Source: Salpingoeca rosetta (taxonomy: Eukaryota; Protista; Choanoflagellata). From it: a stretch of 64,000 bases of DNA. Position 1 is the first letter of the stretch; every line of letters starts with the position of its first letter. Position numbers and translations under genes: made by a program. The stretch is taken from NCBI GenBank assembly GCA_033442325.1, contig JAWQFM010000014.1, positions 1,528,095 through 1,592,094 on the forward strand. The letters are read 5' to 3'. This document shows positions 44,825 through 55,012 of this stretch, piece by piece. Below the pieces are notes generated by a model. It was given only the letters and a program-made list of their open reading frames with translations, made no database searches and was not told the DNA's origin.

Positions 44825-45331
44825 NNNNNNNNNNNNNNNNNNNNNNNNNNNNNNNNNNNNNNNNNNNNNNNNNNNNNNNNNNNNNNNNNNNNNNNNNNNN
44901 NNNNNNNNNNNNNNNNNNNNNNNNNNNNNNNNNNNNNNNNNNNNNNNNNNNNNNNNNNNNNNNNNNNNNNNNNNNNNNNNNNNNNNNNNNNNNNNNNNNN
45001 NNNNNNNNNNNNNNNNATACATACAGACATACATACATACATACATACATTCATACACACACACAAGGTAATACACACACACATACACACACACAAATGC
45101 ACACAAGCACAATGCATTCATTCACACACAATGCACACACGAACACACACCTTTGCCGCCAGACGCGCCAATGGCGACAACGTCGCCCGGTGTAAACAGG
45201 TTCTCGGAAACAATGGTCTCATGGACTTCCTCCTCAAACGCAGCATAGAAGCACTCCCGGCACAGCGCAGCGCCCGTCTTGGGCCGGCGCATCGCCGCCC
45301 GGCTCGTCTCGCACCGCGCACACAACTTCAT
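43192..45331 (-). CDS. CTU1: Cytoplasmic tRNA 2-thiolation protein 1 (Ncs6); central exons missing in gap
   Basis: [36 protein letters not shown]; [40 protein letters not shown]; [25 protein letters not shown]. Confidence 0.95.
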
Positions 45332-45682
45332 CGTCCTCGTCGTCGCCCGCTGCCTGTGTGTTATGATGAAGGAAGGACAAGAGGCAGCGTGGTGCTGACG
45401 ACTGAAATCAGGGGGAATGTGGGCGGCTTGAGGAATAGCGAAAGTCTTCATATATTTTTCGGCTGTGAAGCTTGCAAGCAACCGCACACGATCGGCCCGC
45501 CCACCATCAGCACAACAACCAAAACCCAGACAACCCGACAAACCACCGAAGGCGACAGACGCACACGAAGTGCTGCGGCCGGACATCTCACCCTGCAGGA
45601 CGCGAAGAGAACGACCCAAGCACAGAAGAACAAGTCAAATAGACACGCCACTAGACTGCTTCAGCTTCAAGAACGTGTCATC

Positions 45683-46628
45683 ATGAGCGAACAATACAAC
45701 TCCTTGAAGGAGGCCAGGCTTGCTGCCGAGAAGGAGATCAAGCAACGCATGGCCAGGAGGACACACGCGCGGAAGCGGGAGGAGGAACGGCAGGATGAGC
45801 TTGACGAAGATGAGCCGCCAAACGCGAACAACACAGTCACCGTCATCACCGTCCTTGGCGCTTCCGGGGACCTCGCAAAGAACAAAGTCTACCCCGCGCT
45901 CTGGTACGTTTGACCTGTGTGACCCGTGGCTGTGTTTTCTTCGCTCGTTGAGTGACGTGCAGCAGGGTTGTTCCGCATCATCGTGTGTCCTGCAAGCAAA
46001 ACACACACACACACACAACACACACACACAACACGTGCAGAGCACAACATGCACACTTACCAGTGTTTCATCATGCCTTTGTGTGTGTACATGTACATGT
46101 ACGTGTATGTGTTTGTGCATGTGCACGTGTATGTGTTTGTGTATGTGTATGTGTATGTGTATGCCTGTACGGTTACATGCACCTGCACGTTCAACTGCAC
46201 GTACGCGTTGGATGTTGTGTCCCAGGACCATGTATCGCAAGAGCCTGATCCCGCGGTCGTCGGTGTTTGTCGGCTATGCGCGGAGCAAGTTCACCAGCGA
46301 GGAGTTTATGGGCCGCCTTCGCCCGCATCTCGAGGTCGGATGACCGCACGTGCACGTGCACATGCATTGGAAAGGGGTGGGGGTGGGAGTTGGCTGGCCT
46401 TTGGCATTTGCTGTGCGAAGTGTCATGGATGCAGGTGGCCTGATGCGGGCGGGTGGGTGTGCTAGGGTTTTGCGTGATGGTTCTTGTTGTAATGGTGTCG
46501 TGCGTCGTGCGTGTTCTGTGGCTGAAATNNNNNNNNNNNNNNNNNNNNNNNNNNNNNNNNNNNNNNNNNNNNNNNNNNNNNNNNNNNNNNNNNNNNNNNN
46601 NNNNNNNNNNNNNNNNNNNNNNNNNNNN

Positions 46629-46718
<90 letters not shown>

Positions 46719-47630
46719 TACTACGTCTGCCTGCTCCTCTCGGTCCTTGCATATTTTCATTCACACACATGCTCACTCACTCACATGCTTGCACTAACTC
46801 ACTCACTCACTCACTCACATGCACGCACTCACTCACTCACTCGCTCACATGCACGCACACATGCACACACACACACATGCACGCACATTTTAGAAGTCGT
46901 TCCGGAAGCTGAACGAATACATTGCCCTTCGTGTTGCTGCCAAGGGCAAACTGGTATGGGCAATAGCCAGCGTGATACCACTCACCCACCCAGGCGTGCA
47001 TCCGTCCATCTGTCTATCCACCCACCAATGCATCCATTCGTGGAGCACCTGCACACCTCACATTCTGTTTCGCTCCTGTGCCCTTTGTCCCCTACAGTAC
47101 AGCAATCGTATATTCTACCTTGCCCTTCCCGCCCTTCCCATCATCGAGACCGTCACGGAACATCTCAGCAAACACTGCCAGACACAGGTCGCAAACACAA
47201 GCGCAAGGCTATAGTTGTTGGCACAATATGCTTTGTCATGGCCATGAGTGCATGTACACTTGTTAACATGGATGTGTCTGACCGATTGCACGTGCACACG
47301 TGCTTGCATGTATGTCAAGAAAATTCGCCTATTCTCTTCACTCACGTGGTGGTGCGTCTTTGACAACAGTTTGGGCGGACGCAAGTCGTGGCGAACAAGT
47401 CCCTCAGCTCGGTGAGTCGTGGTGTGTTGCCAACTTCAAGTTTGCATGATGCAAAAATCTTGGAATTGTTGTCAGAAACAGGTATGGGTTGTCAGTCTCC
47501 GTACTCTTACGCACATACCTGATGCGCTCTTCTGTATCGCCCTGTCCGCCACACAGGATTTGTTGCGCGGCTTCGAGGAGGAGCAGATTTGCCGCATGGA
47601 TCATTCTCGCCCAAAAGAGATGGCACAGAA
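45683..47630 (+). other. Glucose-6-phosphate dehydrogenase N-terminal (Rossmann) domain-derived segment, with no G6PD C-terminal domain
   Basis: VLGASGDLAKNKVYPALW, FVGYARS, SFRKLNEYI, NRIFYLALP, GRTQVVANKS (canonical W.RvvvEKPFG) and FEEEQICRMDHSRPKEMAQN (canonical F.EeQIYRIDHYLGKEMVQN) occur in G6PD order. Confidence 0.85.
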
Positions 47631-50600
47631 CTGGCAGCTCGTGCTTGAAAGGCTTAGCAGCAAGCAGGACAGTGCAAGGAAAGACAAGAAGGAAGGGGTG
47701 GCACCTACACTCGCTCGGCTGGAAAGGTTTCTTGCACAGACTGAGTTGGCTGACAAGGTGAAGGACAGAGTCAGGGCCATCGCCAACAGCACTTGTGGGA
47801 AGAAAGTGAGGTGAGTGTGAACGAAGTCTCACTTTGCATGCGTTGAACCTGCAGAAAATGGTCCCTTGACCATATCTTGTCTTTTGCGCGTGCGTGTGAC
47901 TTTGCTCTATTTGCTCCCTTGCGTATGTGCGTGAAATTGCACGACTCTGACGCAACGAAATGTTTTGCTGTTGCTCAATTACTTGTCCTTGTGTGGCTTT
48001 CTTTCTTCTTTCTGTGGAACGCGATGGAATACAGCTTTGCTCAAGATCACATGGGCGACAATGGCGTGCGCGTGGTAGCCGAGGCTCTCCGAAGCAACAC
48101 GTGCATCGAGTGGCTTGAGTGCGTGATATTGCACAGCCGCCATGCACTGGATTACCTCCTTGTTGCAGGAAAGGGGTATGTCGTCCTCTCCTCCGTTCGT
48201 CTGGGTAATGCTCACGCCCTCTGGTATCCCCTGCATGTTCACTTTTCGTGCAAACAGGTTGGACAGCAATCGCATCAGCGACGACGGCGCAGTGGCGTTG
48301 GCGGAAGTGCTAAAGCGCAACGCAACCATCATGACACTTGAGTGAGTGTGGAGTTATCCTTGGTGGCGTGGGCCCAATACACACCGCGTATGGCCCGGTG
48401 GAAGTGGCTGTGAACTTGCGTATATCTCGAGTTGGTTTGCTGTGGCGTTAGCGATTGCGCTGTCCTCTGTTACTCCGTCTAATTCGGTGACGTCTCACCG
48501 TGTTTCACCACTGGCTGATTGTTTTTCTTGGGGGGGGGGGGTCTTCTTCACAGTCTGAACAACAACCGCATCCGTAATGATGGCGCTGTGGCATTGGCGC
48601 AGATGCTGAAGCATAACACAACCATCACGACGCTAAAGTGGGATGCACAGGCGGTTCGGAGCGTGTACATGAACGAACTGGAAGAAGACGTGGACCGTGA
48701 TAGTGTTGCATTAGCACACTCTGTTTTGTAACTGTGTACAACTGCACATTAACTCATGTGTTTCTTTGCACGTGTACTATCATGTGCATCCTCCTCTGGC
48801 AGGTTGGGTTTCAACTCTATCAGCGACGATGGTGCTGTGGCATTGGCAGGAGCACTAGTGCACAACACAACACTTCATGAACTCAGGTGAGTATGGGCTC
48901 CCATCCACATATCCTTGGCACAGGATGGTCGTGCCCTGACAACACGCATCTACGCAGTGACTTGAGTGGTGGTGTGAACGATGCCTGTACTGCTACGTTA
49001 CCCGCGTGGTGTGTGCTTCACTTCTTCCTTGTGTACCGATCAACTGGCGCACGTGAGCATGTTGCATGACATGAAAATTGCCTACTCACCTGGATTGACA
49101 CGCGTTTTATCTTTGTTCTCTTGCATTACTAACATGTGCACGTTCGCGTGTCAGTCTTTGGCGCAATTATATCGCCCCTGCTGGCGGTGCAGCGCTGGCA
49201 GCTGCTCTGAATCAGAATCGCACCCTCAATCAACTCTCGTACGTTGATTGGCCCAGCCCTCCTTGGTCAACTGCTTCTCTTGTGAACTTGCAGTGTAGCC
49301 TCAGCGCACCTGCTCAAACTCACGTCACACCATTCCTGCCCTCCAAACCTCAGCCTGGAGAAAAACTCGGCCGCAACTGCCAGCGCTTTTGGGGCCGCGT
49401 TGCCCGTGGACCGCGAACTTAACGCAGGAGACTGGTCAGCATGACTGGCATGATTCGTCTTCCTGTGTGCCGTGCCTTGTCATGTATCATTCCCAGCCTG
49501 TCAGATATCCTTTCACTGTTGTGCCACAATGCTTGCGTCATGCACAGGGTTCTGGATAATGAGGGGGAATCAGCCTTCAATGAAGCACGCAAGGAGAAGA
49601 TGCAGCAGCACGTGAACCTGTTTCTCGTCTGCAAGAGTGGCGATACCAAAGCGTTGATCTCCCTCATCAATCAAGACCATGCACCCGTCAACCAACAAGA
49701 CGAACAGGTGCGTATGCGTGTATTATGATTGTCCTCTGCTTGCTCCTTCATGTTTCGTGTTCACCGTGAATGAATTGTTCTCACCTCTCTTTTCTCACCA
49801 CTTATGTACTCAACGCAGGGCGACGCCCCGCTGCACGTCGCCTGCAGGCACAAACACCTCGCCATTGTGAAGCTGCTGCTAGACAAGGGCGCAGACACTT
49901 CCGTCAAGAATGCGAAAGTGGGATTTGTTTCGGGCTGATTCCTGAAGTGCAACCGTTGTCTTGCCTTGCGCTGGCCACTTCTGTCTGCCTGCTTCCCTTC
50001 TCGCCTCACCCCATGCTACTCTATCTACATCCTAACATACGCAGGGAGAGACGCCCTACGATGTGGCGACAGCTAGCGGCCACGTTGCCATCATTAGCAT
50101 TGAAGCCCTCAAGCCAGACAGCAAGCCTCAGCAGCAGCAAAAGGAGAAAGGCCCACCTGCGCCAGCCCCTTTCGCCAAATCAAAACGAGGCGGAGAGGCA
50201 GCGCAAGGCGTGAGTGAGGCAGAAAACTTGCATACTTGAAAGCAACGTGGGTGTTTGTGCGCATCTCCTCGCTTACCTCTTTCATGGCTTTCATACTCTG
50301 TTCCCCAGCACAATGTCTCACACCACCGCATCACCATGCCTTGCTCTGCCTGCACCAGCCCGAGAAGGCGCGCAGGGAGCGTCTCCAGCAGCGCATGCGG
50401 GAGGTCGTTGCGCGCTTCAACGCCACCATGGCGGGCAGGGCCAAGCTCATCTTCATTGGCCAGGGGCGCGCCGGCAAGACCAGCACGTTCCACTCACTCA
50501 TGGGCCACACCTTCAACAAGCATGAGCACTCCACGCCTGGCGCCGCGACCGCCGACCTCGCCGTCATTGTCGAGTCCATGGACATCCATGACTGGCAGGT

Positions 50601-51498
50601 GCGTCAGCTAAGCTTATGCGTTTCTGTGAAATGTGCGACGCATGCGTGAAGGGAAGTGTCGTGAGTGACTCGTGATTTGCAATGCGCAGCACAGCGCAAA
50701 CACACACACACACACACACAACCTTGCTTCTCCTCCTCACCTTTGCAGGAGCTGGATGCGGAGATCTCGGAGCTGATGCGCAGTCTCTGCGGCACGGCGC
50801 TGGCGCAGGACTCCGGCGTGAACTTGCAGATGAAGCAGGCGATGATGAAGGCGAAAGCCGACCTGGAGAGCCGAATCGTTCGGTACCAGCAGCAACAGAA
50901 GCAGAGCGAAGCACTGAAGACCAGGCCAAGGGCAAGGACTACCAATCTGAAGCAGAAGGCAACCCCGAAGGAAACACAGTCACAGCAACCATTCCATGAG
51001 TCACCAACGATCGTCCCCGAGCCCACCAAGGCGTCTCATGCCCCAGCATCTGCATCCAAGCAGCAGGTCACAATCGGTCCTTCCAGCAAAGGTGATACTG
51101 CTTCCCACGACAACGAAGAACACGGCAGCCGCGCCACCGCAACCGGCATGTCTACGGAGGAGATGGAGAAGGCGATCAAAGAGCTTAACGTGGATGCCGT
51201 CATGGGCGAGGGCAAAGCACGGGTCACTTTCAAGGTGTTTGACTTGGGCGGCCAGTCCACCTTCTACATCTTCCACCCTTTCTTCCTCACAGAGTGAGTG
51301 CGGCAGTGCGTGTGTACGTGTGTGTGTGCGCGTGTGTCTGTGTGTTTGAGTGTGTGTGCGTGTGTGTGCGTGCATTGTGTGTCTGTGTATCTGTATGTAT
51401 GTATGTATGTGTGCGTGTATGTGTGTGTGTGTGTGTGCGTGTTTGCCTGCTTGCAGTCCCTCCACCACCTCTCCTCCATTCACCTCTCCCTTCATCAC

Positions 51499-51536
<38 letters not shown>

Positions 51537-52103
51537 GCAAGGACTACCAATCTGAAGCAGAAGGCAACCCCGAAGGAAACACAGTCACAGCAACCATTCC
51601 ATGAGTCACCAACGATCGTCCCCGAGCCCACCAAGGCGTCTCATGCCCCAGCATCTGCATCCAAGCAGCAGGTCACAATCGGTCCTTCCAGCAAAGGTGA
51701 TACTGCTTCCCACGACAACGAAGAACACGGCAGCCGCGCCACCGCAACCGGCATGTCTACGGAGGAGATGGAGAAGGCGATCAAAGAGCTTAACGTGGAT
51801 GCCGTCATGGGCGAGGGCAAAGCACGGGTCACTTTCAAGGTGTTTGACTTGGGCGGCCAGTCCACCTTCTACATCTTCCACCCTTTCTTCCTCACAGAGT
51901 GAGTGCGGCAGTGCGTGTGTACGTGTGTGTGTGCGCGTGTGTCTGTGTGTTTGAGTGTGTGTGCGTGTGTGTGCGTGCATTGTGTGTCTGTGTATCTGTA
52001 TGTATGTATGTATGTGTGCGTGTATGTGTGTGTGTGTGTGTGCGTGTTTGCCTGCTTGCAGTCCCTCCACCACCTCTCCTCCATTCACCTCTCCCTTCAT
52101 CAC

Positions 52104-52143
<40 letters not shown>

Positions 52144-55012
52144 AGGTACGCGGTGTACCTGCTGGTGTTCTCCATGAAGGACCTGCTGCACCAAGATGAG
52201 AGCAAGCGAGCTGAATCGTGGGAGTTTATGGAGCACTGGCTCTCCTCTCTCCACCTCCACGCCAAGGGCGCACCCGTCCTCATCGTCGGCACGTTTGCTG
52301 ACAAGATTATCGAGCGGAAGCAGCACGAGGCCATCTCACGCGACATCTACAGCCGCTTGCGCCACAACCCCGCTTTCCCTGGCGTCATTCACAACGACAA
52401 ACACGGCCTGTGGTTCTGGCCCGTCGACAACACCAAGTCTATCAACGACACCATGATCCAGGACCTGCGCCAGACCATCTCCTCCACAGCACTGGCGCAG
52501 GAGTACGTGAGCCAGGAAGTGGCCGTCCCTTACCTCCACCTCTTCGACAAACTCCACGCCATCGCCCGCGACGAGAAGCGACCTCTGCTTACGTTTGACG
52601 AGGTGGTGGACATTGCGCGCACGTGTGGGCTGCGCACGCGTGACGAGACGAGAGCCTGCCTGCAGTTCCTGCACCTGTACTCAATGGTGCTGTGCTATGA
52701 CCACGTGCCAGGCATGGAGGACTATGTGATCCTGAGTCCGCAGTGGGCGGTGGACACGATGGCCCGCGTCATCCGCAACTTTGATCTGCACCGCGATGTG
52801 CGCGATGGCGAGGCGAGGGCCGTTGGCGCACAGCTGTGGGACGACCTGGTTGACCGTGGCATCCTGCATCGCCGCCTGCTGGATGTGCTGTGGAACGACG
52901 TGGACAGCAACTTGGTACTGCCATTCCTGTGCTTGATGATGCAGTACGGGCTGTGTGTTGAGTACTCTCCACCCAAGCTGGTGGACAGTCGCAGAGCACT
53001 CGCACGCACCAACTCTGGCCACGGTGACAACGCTACAGCCAAGGGCAGCAAGGGCAGCAGTCCCGGGCACCAGCAGTACCTGGTCCCTGCCATCCTGCCG
53101 ATGACGATTCGCCACAACAACAGCGAGATGGCATCCGTGTCACTTAGCACGACGGCAGCACAGCAGGTCAACCCATACGTTGGTTATGAAGAGAAGACAG
53201 CCTACGTCACCTTCAGCCTGAAGCAGTTCAAGCGAAGTGCGAGCGTGCGAGTTGAAGATGTGCAACAAGCGTCATTCCTGCCAGAGGGGTTGTTCACCGT
53301 TGTGCTGGCCCATGTGATGATGCATGCACAGCACGGTGCATCACAGGAGCCCAAGCTGAGCCGCACCCACGCCGTGTGCTTCATGGAGTCCACCAAGCTG
53401 GAGCTGCAGCTTGTGCCGGCTGTTGGCGGCATCAAGATGAAGATCACGAGTGCACAGCCACGTGCTGTGCTGCACATGCTGCACAGCATGATCAGCGAGG
53501 CCGCCAGAGAGCGCTACCCCGAGCTGAAGAGCAGCCTGCTGCTGCCGTTCGACGACAAGACGCTGCTGTTCTTCGAGGACATGCTGCACCACCACAAGCG
53601 CAAGCAGGACATGTGGGTGGACGAACAGCTGCTGTCACCCGATGACCTGGTCACCAAATACGGCCCTCTTCTGCCCGTCCTTGGCCTGCAGGACAAGTAC
53701 GACGTCTTCATCAGCTACAGGTGAGACGTGTGTGTGTGTGTGTGTACGTGTGTGTGTGTGTGCGTGTGTGTGTGTCTGCCTGCCTGTCTGTCTGTCTGTC
53801 TGTCACTTCCATCCACCACCACTGCTGCTCCACACCACTCCACCTCACATCCCCCTTCTCCCGCCGCCACCATCACCACCTCAGGCAACGCGCCAGCAGT
53901 GGGCTGGTGATGGCGCTGCACCCGCGCTTGGAGCAGCGCAACCTGGTTGCGTTCCTGGACGCCAACAACCTGGAGACGGGCCTCAACTTCAAGTTGTCGT
54001 TCATGACGGCGATTGGGCTGAGTCTGGTGGCCTGCCCCATCGTCTCTGCTGCCACCATCATGCAGATGAGGCAGCTGCAGCACAGCGACTACTGCGACAA
54101 CGTGCTGCTGGAGTGGATGACGATGCTGGCGCTGCGCGAGTACCAACGGGCGCACGAAGAAGATGAGGAGCAACATGCCAAGATTCGCCTTCACCGCGTC
54201 GTGCCTGTCATTGTTGGCAGCGCATGGCACAATGTGAACGACAGCAGCATGAGCAAGGCCGAGGTGAGCGAGTACGACTCGTTTGACCGCCTGAAGCGGC
54301 TGACAACGAAGCTGCCGGATGTTGTCAGCAAGGAGACGGCAGCAGCCCTGGACCAGTACTTTTCGCAGGTGCTGCACTTACCACCACCACAGCAGCACAA
54401 GAGCGTGCGCGAGACTGTGCTGTCGCTGTTTGACATTGACGCCGTGGTTGTATTGGACGCCACTGAGGACCGCACGTCGCAGCTGCGCGACATTGCAGAG
54501 AAGGTGCGCCAAGTTGTCGTCTCTGCCAGGAGTGACGAGCAGGCAGGGAATGGAGCAGCAACTGCACGTCGTTCCACGCAGGTATGCGTGCTGTGCTGTG
54601 CCCTTTGCACATGTGTTTGCATACATGCACGCATGCTCAATCTCTTCCTCTTCCACCACTTGGCGCTCACGCTGTGCTTCACGCACCCGCTTGGTAGCCT
54701 ATCCTGCAATCGTCCTTGTCATACTCCACCACTGCCACAACTCCTGCTCCACCACCACCTGCCACCCCATTGGCCTCTTCCTCCTCCTCGCCATTTGAGC
54801 CCGAACTGGCGGCATGGCTCACACAACACTCGCTGCTGCCACACGTAAAGCAAGCGCTGGTGGAGCACTGCATCGACTCCCTGGAGGTGCTGGTGGGGGT
54901 CGTGCGTGAGGGCTTACTCACCACACAGGCACTTGTTGCAAGCGGCGTGCCGATGGGTGCTGCGTTTAAGCTGGTGCAAAAAGCGAAACGTAGTGCGGAT
55001 GGCAATGCATAG
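45683..55012 (+). CDS. Chimeric Roco protein: degenerate G6PD NADP-binding domain - RI-type LRRs - ankyrin - Roc GTPase - COR - TIR - SAM-like
   Basis: Phase-compatible exons 45683-45903, 46226-46334, [gap], 46894-46953, 47098-47187, 47370-47411, 47557-47810, five 84-nt LRR exons (48035-49238), 49354-49434, 49548-49707, 49819-49917, 50045-50209, 50359-50598, 50749-51293, 52146-53720, 53885-54581, 54698-55012. Roc GQGRAGKTS / FDLGGQ / VGTFAD; COR VILSPQW; TIR YDVFISYR..AFLD..NVLLEW. Confidence 0.8.
50931..52140 (+). repeat. 605-bp direct tandem duplication inside the Roc-coding region (partial exon plus intron)
   Basis: 50931-51535 recurs at 51536-52140; the ORF track shows identical translations offset by 605 nt. 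Confidence 0.92.

Follow-up and report, generated by a model that had tools for sequence, protein, structure and literature searches.

A partial G6PD duplicate forms the 5' end of a ROCO-family gene in Salpingoeca rosetta

In the genome of the choanoflagellate Salpingoeca rosetta, a series of short exons resembles part of glucose-6-phosphate dehydrogenase (G6PD), with some of the motifs of the enzyme intact and others altered or absent. A preliminary description read this contrast as selective decay of the substrate motifs in a pseudo-enzyme that may have been kept for nucleotide binding, and the question raised by the locus is whether site-specific selection or history accounts for the pattern. 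The window analyzed here is a stretch of 64,000 nucleotides of contig C14 (JAWQFM010000014.1, positions 1,528,095 to 1,592,094) in an intron-rich genome of 55.4 Mb. From 45683 to about 47645 on the plus strand, it contains short exons with GT..AG borders whose translations are collinear with the N-terminal coenzyme domain of G6PD. They are listed here with their identity to a G6PD gene on contig C1; RNA-like contigs are those of the RNA-like run (X4).

45683–45903, plus strand: exon 1 as a whole, ending ...TVTVITVLGASGDLAKNKVYPALW
45683–45829, plus strand: locus-specific 5' part of exon 1, with the ATG; charged, coiled-coil-like (MSEQYNSLKEARLAAEKE...), not G6PD-derived
45830–45903, plus strand: G6PD-derived part of exon 1 (NTVTVITVLGASGDLAKNKVYPALW), with a GT donor at 45904; 91.9% identical to C1
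46226–46334, plus strand: exon 2 (TMYRKSLIPRSSVFVGYARSKFTSEEFMGRLRPHLE), with the equivalents of Ala71, Arg72, and Ser73; 96.3% identical to C1
46529–46628: run of 100 Ns adjoining an expanded (CT)n repeat; expected site of exon 3
46894–46953, plus strand: exon 4 (KSFRKLNEYIALRVAAKGKL); 93.3% identical to C1; GT..AG joint to exon 5 in RNA-like contigs
47098–47187, plus strand: exon 5 (YSNRIFYLALPALPIIETVTEHLSKHCQTQ); 85.1% identical to C1 plus a 3-nt insertion; joints in RNA-like contigs
47370–47411, plus strand: exon 6 (FGRTQVVANKSLSS); 42 nt, 30 nt shorter than the C1 exon; joints on both sides
47557–47645, plus strand: G6PD-derived 5' part of exon 7 (DLLRGFEEEQICRMDHSRPKEMAQNWQLVL); 70.8% of nucleotides and 17 of 30 amino acids identical to C1

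Single exons queried against Pfam gave collinear G6PD_N matches of 18.3, 15.0, and 13.8 bits, each below the cut-off of 22.1 bits. By PDB alignment, the G6PD part of exon 1 corresponds to human residues 33–51 (G6PD_N profile positions 2–18), exon 2 to residues 55–84 (positions 21–54), exon 5 to residues 134–161, and exon 7 to residues 191–213 (positions 161–183); the whole of exon 7 retrieved no G6PD match in the PDB search, and its first 33 residues alone gave a weak one. The homology to G6PD is established by a DNA identity of 85–98% with the C1 gene. The genome contains three other G6PD-type loci, with matches to PF02781 on C1 and C3 only, and across the whole genome a DNA-level match that includes the introns was found to a single other locus, C1:2239762-2241544. 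This lies in a full G6PD paralog with both domains (PF00479 and PF02781; G000:C1, ~2239.7–2243.2 kb) that has the same exon/intron structure as the window copy. Because the match is collinear and runs through the introns, the G6PD-like exons are a partial segmental duplicate of the C1 paralog, made at the DNA level with introns included.

The homology to C1 begins inside exon 1, at 45830, and stops inside exon 7 near 47645, almost exactly at the border between the Pfam G6PD_N and G6PD_C domains. No G6PD_C sequence was found 3' of 47645, where the spliced continuation consists of a linker and leucine-rich-repeat (LRR) exons. At the other end, the first 50 nt after the ATG (45687–45736) are 88% identical to the end of an exon in an unrelated coiled-coil gene (G000:C10:569127-569176), so the 5' end of the chimeric gene is a patchwork of at least three sources. 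Exon 3, which in C1 reads ASEEDATLLDKFLHRCEYQVGTYDEE and contains the equivalent of Tyr112, is not present in the sequence of the window. The segment 46390–46434 (LAGLWHLLCEVSWMQ) was considered for this role and ruled out: it falls within intron 2, whose identity to the corresponding C1 intron is 98%, and the true C1 exon 3 sits further 3', where the window has Ns. A DNA-run contig that covers exon 2 and intron 2 and runs into the gap was rejected as a source of exon 3 because it is a mosaic of window-type and C1-type variants.

The parent gene has peculiarities of its own. In the stretch G000:C1:2238500-2244700 (exon 1 at about 1295–1368 of that stretch), it reads GASGYLA, with Tyr for a near-invariant Asp of the dinucleotide fingerprint, and it has KGLNENK at a position where human G6PD has KALNERK. 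Raw RNA reads carry its variants, showing that it is expressed, and it may itself be a diverged G6PD. The best-scoring G6PD locus is the one on C3 (G000:C3:501400-507400, reverse strand; about 1900–2230 of the reverse complement). There, exon 2 (..AGYARSKLSHDDLVGRIKPFLK) is followed by a (GT)n repeat and then directly by the exon with LEKPFGKDSESFAKLSD, so that equivalents of exons 3–5 (about 75 residues, including NRxFYLALP) are lacking in this assembly, either through collapse at the repeat or through a real deletion.

Downstream of the G6PD remnant, the exons belong to a protein of a different kind.

47646–47810, plus strand: rest of exon 7; short linker, then ..LERFLAQTELADKVKDRVRAIANSTCGKKV, homologous to the first coding exon of a gene family
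48035–49434, plus strand: six LRR exons of 81–84 nt, mostly with one RI-type leucine-rich repeat each, pattern read by eye
49548–50209, plus strand: ankyrin-repeat exons; Pfam Ank 37.2 bits; joints in RNA-like contigs
50359–51295, plus strand: Roc GTPase exons; P-loop GQGRAGKT and DLGGQ; Pfam Roc 28.7 bits (cut-off 27)
52147–53721, plus strand: large COR-A exon; Pfam COR-A 59.6 bits (cut-off 35.3); ends in DVFISYR, a TIR-like first strand
53895–54581, plus strand: TIR-like exon; weak, Pfam TIR_2 E = 0.017, 16 bits, below the cut-off of 28

The Roc and COR domains, in that order, are both above their Pfam cut-offs. Several of the LRR exons encode about 28 residues with the pattern L..N.I.D.GA.ALA..L..N.TL..L, and two of them, queried singly, had no Pfam match. 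The ends of the COR-A exon are those expected from the frame and from splice-site-like bases (ag before 52146, gt after 53721), with no joint seen, and the TIR_2 score comes from the 53895–54581 exon alone, the first strand (DVFISYR) being in the exon before it. The same set of LRR-like, ankyrin, Roc, and COR-A segments is found in its usual order in ROCO proteins (LRRK-type, Dictyostelium, and prokaryotic Roco proteins); the chimeric gene differs from these in that no kinase domain was seen and in its weak TIR-like C-terminal exon.

More than 25 loci have a first coding exon homologous to the 3' part of exon 7, and the donor is at the same position in the window as in the family. Nine family loci were read, and in all of them the exon ends at this donor position; eight start with MSGGEKRAREEVEALLAQTKL...IRAIANNTCG, and the ninth, on C2, lacks the MSGGEK... 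start. In these eight, the short first coding exon (MSGGEKRAREEVEALLAQTKLKDGVKDKIRAIANNTCG..) is near-identical and is preceded by a conserved 5' leader. The chimeric gene, alone in comparison with these eight, has an N-terminal G6PD remnant. The family ATG is missing from the corresponding place in the window, so that, if the full frame is used, translation must begin upstream and cross the remnant; the ATG at 45683 probably serves as the start.

The preliminary description was right about several of the motifs. GASGDLA is intact in exon 1 (aligned to human residues 38–44), as is GYARS in exon 2 (VGYARS, human residues 68–73), with Arg72, the ligand of the 2'-phosphate of NADP, in place. RIDHYLGKE (human residues 198–206) has become RMDHSRPKE in exon 7, where Asp200, His201, Lys205, and Glu206 are kept and Tyr202, Leu203, and Gly204 are replaced by Ser, Arg, and Pro. 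The C-terminal β+α domain (PF02781), which contains the catalytic His263, is missing, as had been stated. Other features shared with full G6PD are GxxGDLx and NR(I/L)FYLALP, the latter followed by a one-codon insertion directly after ALP, in the coenzyme-contact loop (human residues 141–144).

The supposed change of EKPFG to NKSLS, by contrast with these, is a misalignment. The corresponding C1 exon 6 is AGWTRIVLEKPFGTDLESFKSLSA (72 nt, human residues 163–184), and when the two exons are aligned, FGRTQVVA in the window pairs with AGWTRIVL in C1 and NKSLSS with FKSLSA, so that KSLS is matched by the KSLS of C1 itself. EKPFGTDLES (human residues 170–179) has been removed by one 30-nt in-frame deletion relative to C1 exon 6, and this deletion also explains the helix seen as shortened after EKPFG. 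EKPxG (human residues 170–174) is gone together with TDLES. This motif had been counted among those for the substrate; that role stands, but EKPxG also positions the coenzyme (PMC8499492, PMC11448927). Lys171 bonds the nicotinamide ribose (PMC8499492, PMC11448927), which Glu170, Lys171, and Pro172 together position (PMC11448927), and the loss of EKPxG therefore damages the coenzyme site as well as the substrate site. With Lys171 and Pro172 deleted, Tyr202, Leu203, and Gly204 changed, and the β+α domain with His263 absent, catalysis of the G6PD reaction would be impossible; the designation as a pseudo-enzyme holds, and by its sequence the remnant is certainly to be regarded as a catalytically dead G6PD. 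Most of the G6P site is lost in two single events, the breakpoint and the 30-nt deletion. The adenosine-2'-phosphate half-site (GASGDLA and Arg72) is intact, and Asp42, the canonical residue, has been retained in the window copy but is Tyr in C1.

Whether the surviving motifs owe their survival to selection can be judged from the introns. These diverge from C1 in the same direction as the exons listed above, with divergence climbing from 5' to 3': intron 1 is 90.5 and 96.1% identical in its two alignable parts, intron 2 98.4%, intron 3 88.9%, and intron 4 87.5%, and introns 5 and 6 are at about 46%, which is random and unalignable. Exons are no better conserved than their flanking introns on either side of the gap (p = 0.51 pre-gap, p = 1.0 post-gap). 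Because the gradient is the same in introns and exons, it reflects the age of the tracts and not selection at the protein level. The preliminary description had itself counted an origin of the conserved pre-gap exons from a different gene copy against selective decay, and this is largely borne out in the form of a different copy history, intron divergence from C1 being 4.0% before the gap and 12.2% after it (p = 0.0005).

Nei-Gojobori comparison with C1 gives dS, dN, and ω of 0.15, 0.03, and 0.21 for exons 1 + 2, of 0.35, 0.07, and 0.20 for exons 4 + 5, and of 1.06, 0.31, and 0.29 for exons 6 + 7. Constraint is thus about uniform over three tracts whose ages spread roughly 7-fold. The pairwise ω of 0.2–0.3 is below the value of about 0.5 expected if the copy were neutral and C1 constrained, with counts too small to reject neutrality. 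Contact residues, taken from the lists of Wei et al. 2022 (PMC9303983), tell the same for NADP and G6P. Of the NADP contacts, 10 of 14 assessable ones are kept (Ser40, Gly41, Asp42, Leu43, Ala71, Arg72, Ser73, Ala141, Leu142, and Pro143) and Pro144, Glu170, Lys171, and Pro172 are lost, Tyr112 being left out of the count since it falls in the N gap. Among G6P-site and catalytic residues within the retained span, three of five are kept (Asp200, His201, and Lys205), with Lys171 and Tyr202 lost; the proportions do not differ (Fisher p = 1). Selective decay is not upheld by these comparisons: the intact motifs lie in tracts that are 92–98% identical to C1, introns alike, the decayed ones lie beside saturated introns, and ω is about the same in all three. 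Nor is retention for nucleotide binding, as the contrast follows tract age and the deleted EKPxG is itself coenzyme-positioning. The contrast between intact and decayed motifs is most probably a matter of history, not of site-specific selection.

The best explanation, to which we give a probability of roughly two-thirds, is that a duplicate of the 5' third of the C1 gene was fused in frame to a ROCO-family gene and is catalytically dead, with the motif contrast a product of its history. The copied piece would extend from inside exon 1 to inside exon 7 of the C1 G6PD, introns included; 5' of it would lie a promoter and start region specific to the locus, and 3' of it, fused within exon 7, the first coding exon of an LRR-ANK-Roc-COR-family gene. 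The duplication and fusion would be old, and sequence exchange with C1 would have followed. (i) The 3' tract, with the deletion and the breakpoint, runs from intron 5 to exon 7 and would be old, with a dS of about 1 and unalignable introns. (ii) Exons 1–5 would be much younger (about 12% diverged), having been renewed by exchange with C1. (iii) Exon 2 and intron 2 would be the youngest (about 2.6% diverged), renewed more recently. The exchange was most likely gene conversion from the C1 paralog. The product is a young chimeric gene, unique in the genome, that carries the dead remnant of a G6PD coenzyme domain on an LRR-ANK-Roc-COR-(TIR-like) protein, and we infer that the protein now tolerates the remnant as an N-terminal extension and does not use it to sense a ligand.

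Several observations count against this explanation. The breakpoint is on the G6PD_N/G6PD_C border, for which chance allows about 10 of 500 codons, and this could reflect the survival of a chimera with a complete coenzyme domain. The adenosine-2'-phosphate half-site, the splice sites, and the frame are intact, ω is 0.2–0.3, and splicing of exons 1-2-3-4 has not been seen for the window copy. As pointers to function, the border breakpoint, the half-site, the splice sites and frame, and an ω below 0.5 are none of them decisive; should the downstream protein rely on the upstream ATG, the frame would have to stay intact in any case.

The same features can be read as signs that the truncated coenzyme domain was selected as an NADP(H) or nucleotide sensor on the LRR-ANK-Roc-COR-(TIR) protein while its substrate site decayed. 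Intact GASGDLA and Ala71/Arg72/Ser73, the 10 of 14 NADP contacts, the position of the breakpoint, the preserved frame and splice sites in a transcript that is spliced into the downstream exons, the low ω, and the weak TIR_2 match downstream would all fit such a protein, but conservation follows tract age in introns and exons alike, and the "coenzyme" exons do not have a lower ω than the "substrate" exons. Moreover, Glu170, Lys171, and Pro172 are deleted (PMC11448927), a residue is inserted next to Pro143, the Tyr112 region falls in the gap, and the genome has no second copy of the fusion. Exon 7 (84 aa), queried against a set of 1.84 billion protein representatives, gave 0 matches and no annotated self protein, which also counts against a selected sensor, although for one short exon this does not demonstrate absence. 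Selection of the domain as a sensor is unlikely on the balance of these points. That the remnant binds adenosine-2'-phosphate or another nucleotide and acts as a metabolic or redox sensor gating the signaling protein, as an integrated domain refreshed by conversion, appears distinctly unlikely.

Transcripts provide evidence on how much of the frame is used. In RNA-like contigs, GT..AG joints connect exons 4-5-6-7 with the LRR, then the ankyrin, and then the Roc exons, including the joint of 47810 to 48035 between exon 7 and the first LRR exon, and in the Roc-exon region one joint also occurs in raw RNA reads. Splicing extends in this way over exons 4 to 18, with the joined frame open over 719 codons. 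Read from the ATG at 45683, all exons seen keep an open frame, the 30-nt deletion and the 3-nt insertion both being in frame and the splice sites intact. Positions 45550–45859 are spanned by one DNA-run contig and one RNA-like contig, and the RNA-like contig over 45467–45859 has a depth of 16, similar to exon 7. A spliced RNA-like contig of 519 nt has about 73 nt 5' of exon 4 without a counterpart in the window, consistent with an exon 3 hidden in the N gap. Joints between exons 1, 2, 3, and 4 of the window copy were not seen in RNA reads or contigs. Raw RNA reads that cover exons 1 and 2 and the exon 2-to-3 run-on were set aside as support for the window copy, since those over exons 1 and 2 have four bases and a 5' flank that are specific to C1 and so are cross-mapped C1 transcripts. 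No window-type raw RNA reads were found on exon 2 or on the locus-specific part of exon 1, and exons 4–7 have depths of 0.5–2.5× (X15). Expression of the chimeric gene is low.

Intron 7 (47811–48034) is represented by an unspliced RNA-like contig (47781–48035) with a depth of 17.4, compared with 10.9 for the spliced form. Its retention would place a TGA directly after exon 7, and the protein would then stop after the G6PD remnant and linker.

It is conceivable, and in our judgment quite unlikely, that the G6PD exons are transcribed without being translated as a domain, as 5' UTR exons, as part of a mostly unproductive transcript, or as a decaying pseudogene, with translation from a later Met, for instance within RMDH of exon 7 or within the first LRR exon. 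The lack of window-type raw reads on exon 2 and the locus-specific part of exon 1, the depth of the unspliced intron 7 with its immediate stop codon, the low expression, and the lost family ATG are in line with such a fate; the depth of 16 over 45467–45859, a frame that has stayed open from the ATG at 45683 in all exons seen despite indels of 30 and 3 nt, and the exon 4–7 contig with its apparent exon 3 argue for a translated extension. An assembly artefact, in which near-identity to C1 caused exons 1 and 2 to be mis-scaffolded so that the intact and decayed motifs come from different genes, would account for the 100-N gap between the pieces, for the 4 and 12% divergence from C1 on its two sides, and for the mixed variants in the DNA-run contig over exon 2 and intron 2, but is very improbable given that order and orientation are collinear with C1 across the gap, that window-specific variants of exons 1 and 2 are present in the DNA run and the junction at 45830 is spanned, that the genome has no third copy to own the pre-gap piece, and that exon 1 and intron 1 are about 9–10% diverged from C1, near the post-gap value.

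As a partial G6PD duplicate fused to a ROCO-family gene, the locus has a known parallel. Drosophila jingwei is a young chimeric gene with an Adh-derived domain that arose by partial gene duplication and fusion. As in chimeras of that type, a fragment of a metabolic dehydrogenase is joined in frame to the exons of another gene and transcribed, the chimera is lineage-specific, and the parental copy remains in the genome. The S. rosetta gene differs in that its introns are kept, as in DNA-level duplication and not retroposition, in that the remnant supplies the N terminus, and in its mosaic of divergence ages, which suggests repeated gene conversion. Compared with full G6PD, it has the coenzyme domain only, without G6PD_C, the catalytic His, and EKPFGTDLES, with one residue added after ALP and with Tyr202, Leu203, and Gly204 replaced, and it is fused to unrelated domains. 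It illustrates clearly how a chimeric gene is born: a member of an expanded ROCO/NLR-like family acquired its new 5' end from a partial, intron-bearing duplicate of a metabolic gene, and subsequent exchange of sequence with the parent gene is recorded in the mosaic of divergence. For pseudo-enzymes in general, it is a caution that a pattern of kept and lost motifs may stem from tracts of different age, for which introns are a control.

SARM1-type proteins are nucleotide-regulated TIR proteins. The resemblance to them is one of idea only, that of an N-terminal domain for nucleotide binding preceding a TIR-like one; the chimeric protein has no ARM domain, its TIR match is below the cut-off, and its remnant, which lacks the nicotinamide-positioning loop, is a putative nucleotide binder. 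Binding of NADP(H) by the fragment, if real, would make it an unusual module for nucleotide sensing on a Roc-COR/TIR-like protein, and the sensor would be a newly born integrated domain derived from a housekeeping enzyme in a unicellular relative of animals.

Some further features of the assembly and its surroundings were noted. Between 37214 and 46628 the window has five N runs (100, 389, 100, 192, and 100 nt), across which gene models are incomplete; those at 44825–45016 and 46529–46628 are flanked by CA or CT microsatellites. Many of the matches to the ROCO family sit close to where their contig starts or ends. A stretch of about 400–700 bp is directly duplicated (window 50880–51300 and 51560–51900), including the 3' part of the Roc exon (..DLGGQSTFYIFHPFFLTE) and the start of the next intron; either this is a tandem duplicate or it arose in the assembly as an artefact, and paralogs are the source of many of the reads in this region. 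On the minus strand, at 45122–45388, a divergent gene starts about 300 bp upstream of the chimeric ATG. Its product, read by eye, looks like cytoplasmic tRNA 2-thiolation protein 1, and a bidirectional promoter common to this gene and the chimeric gene is possible.
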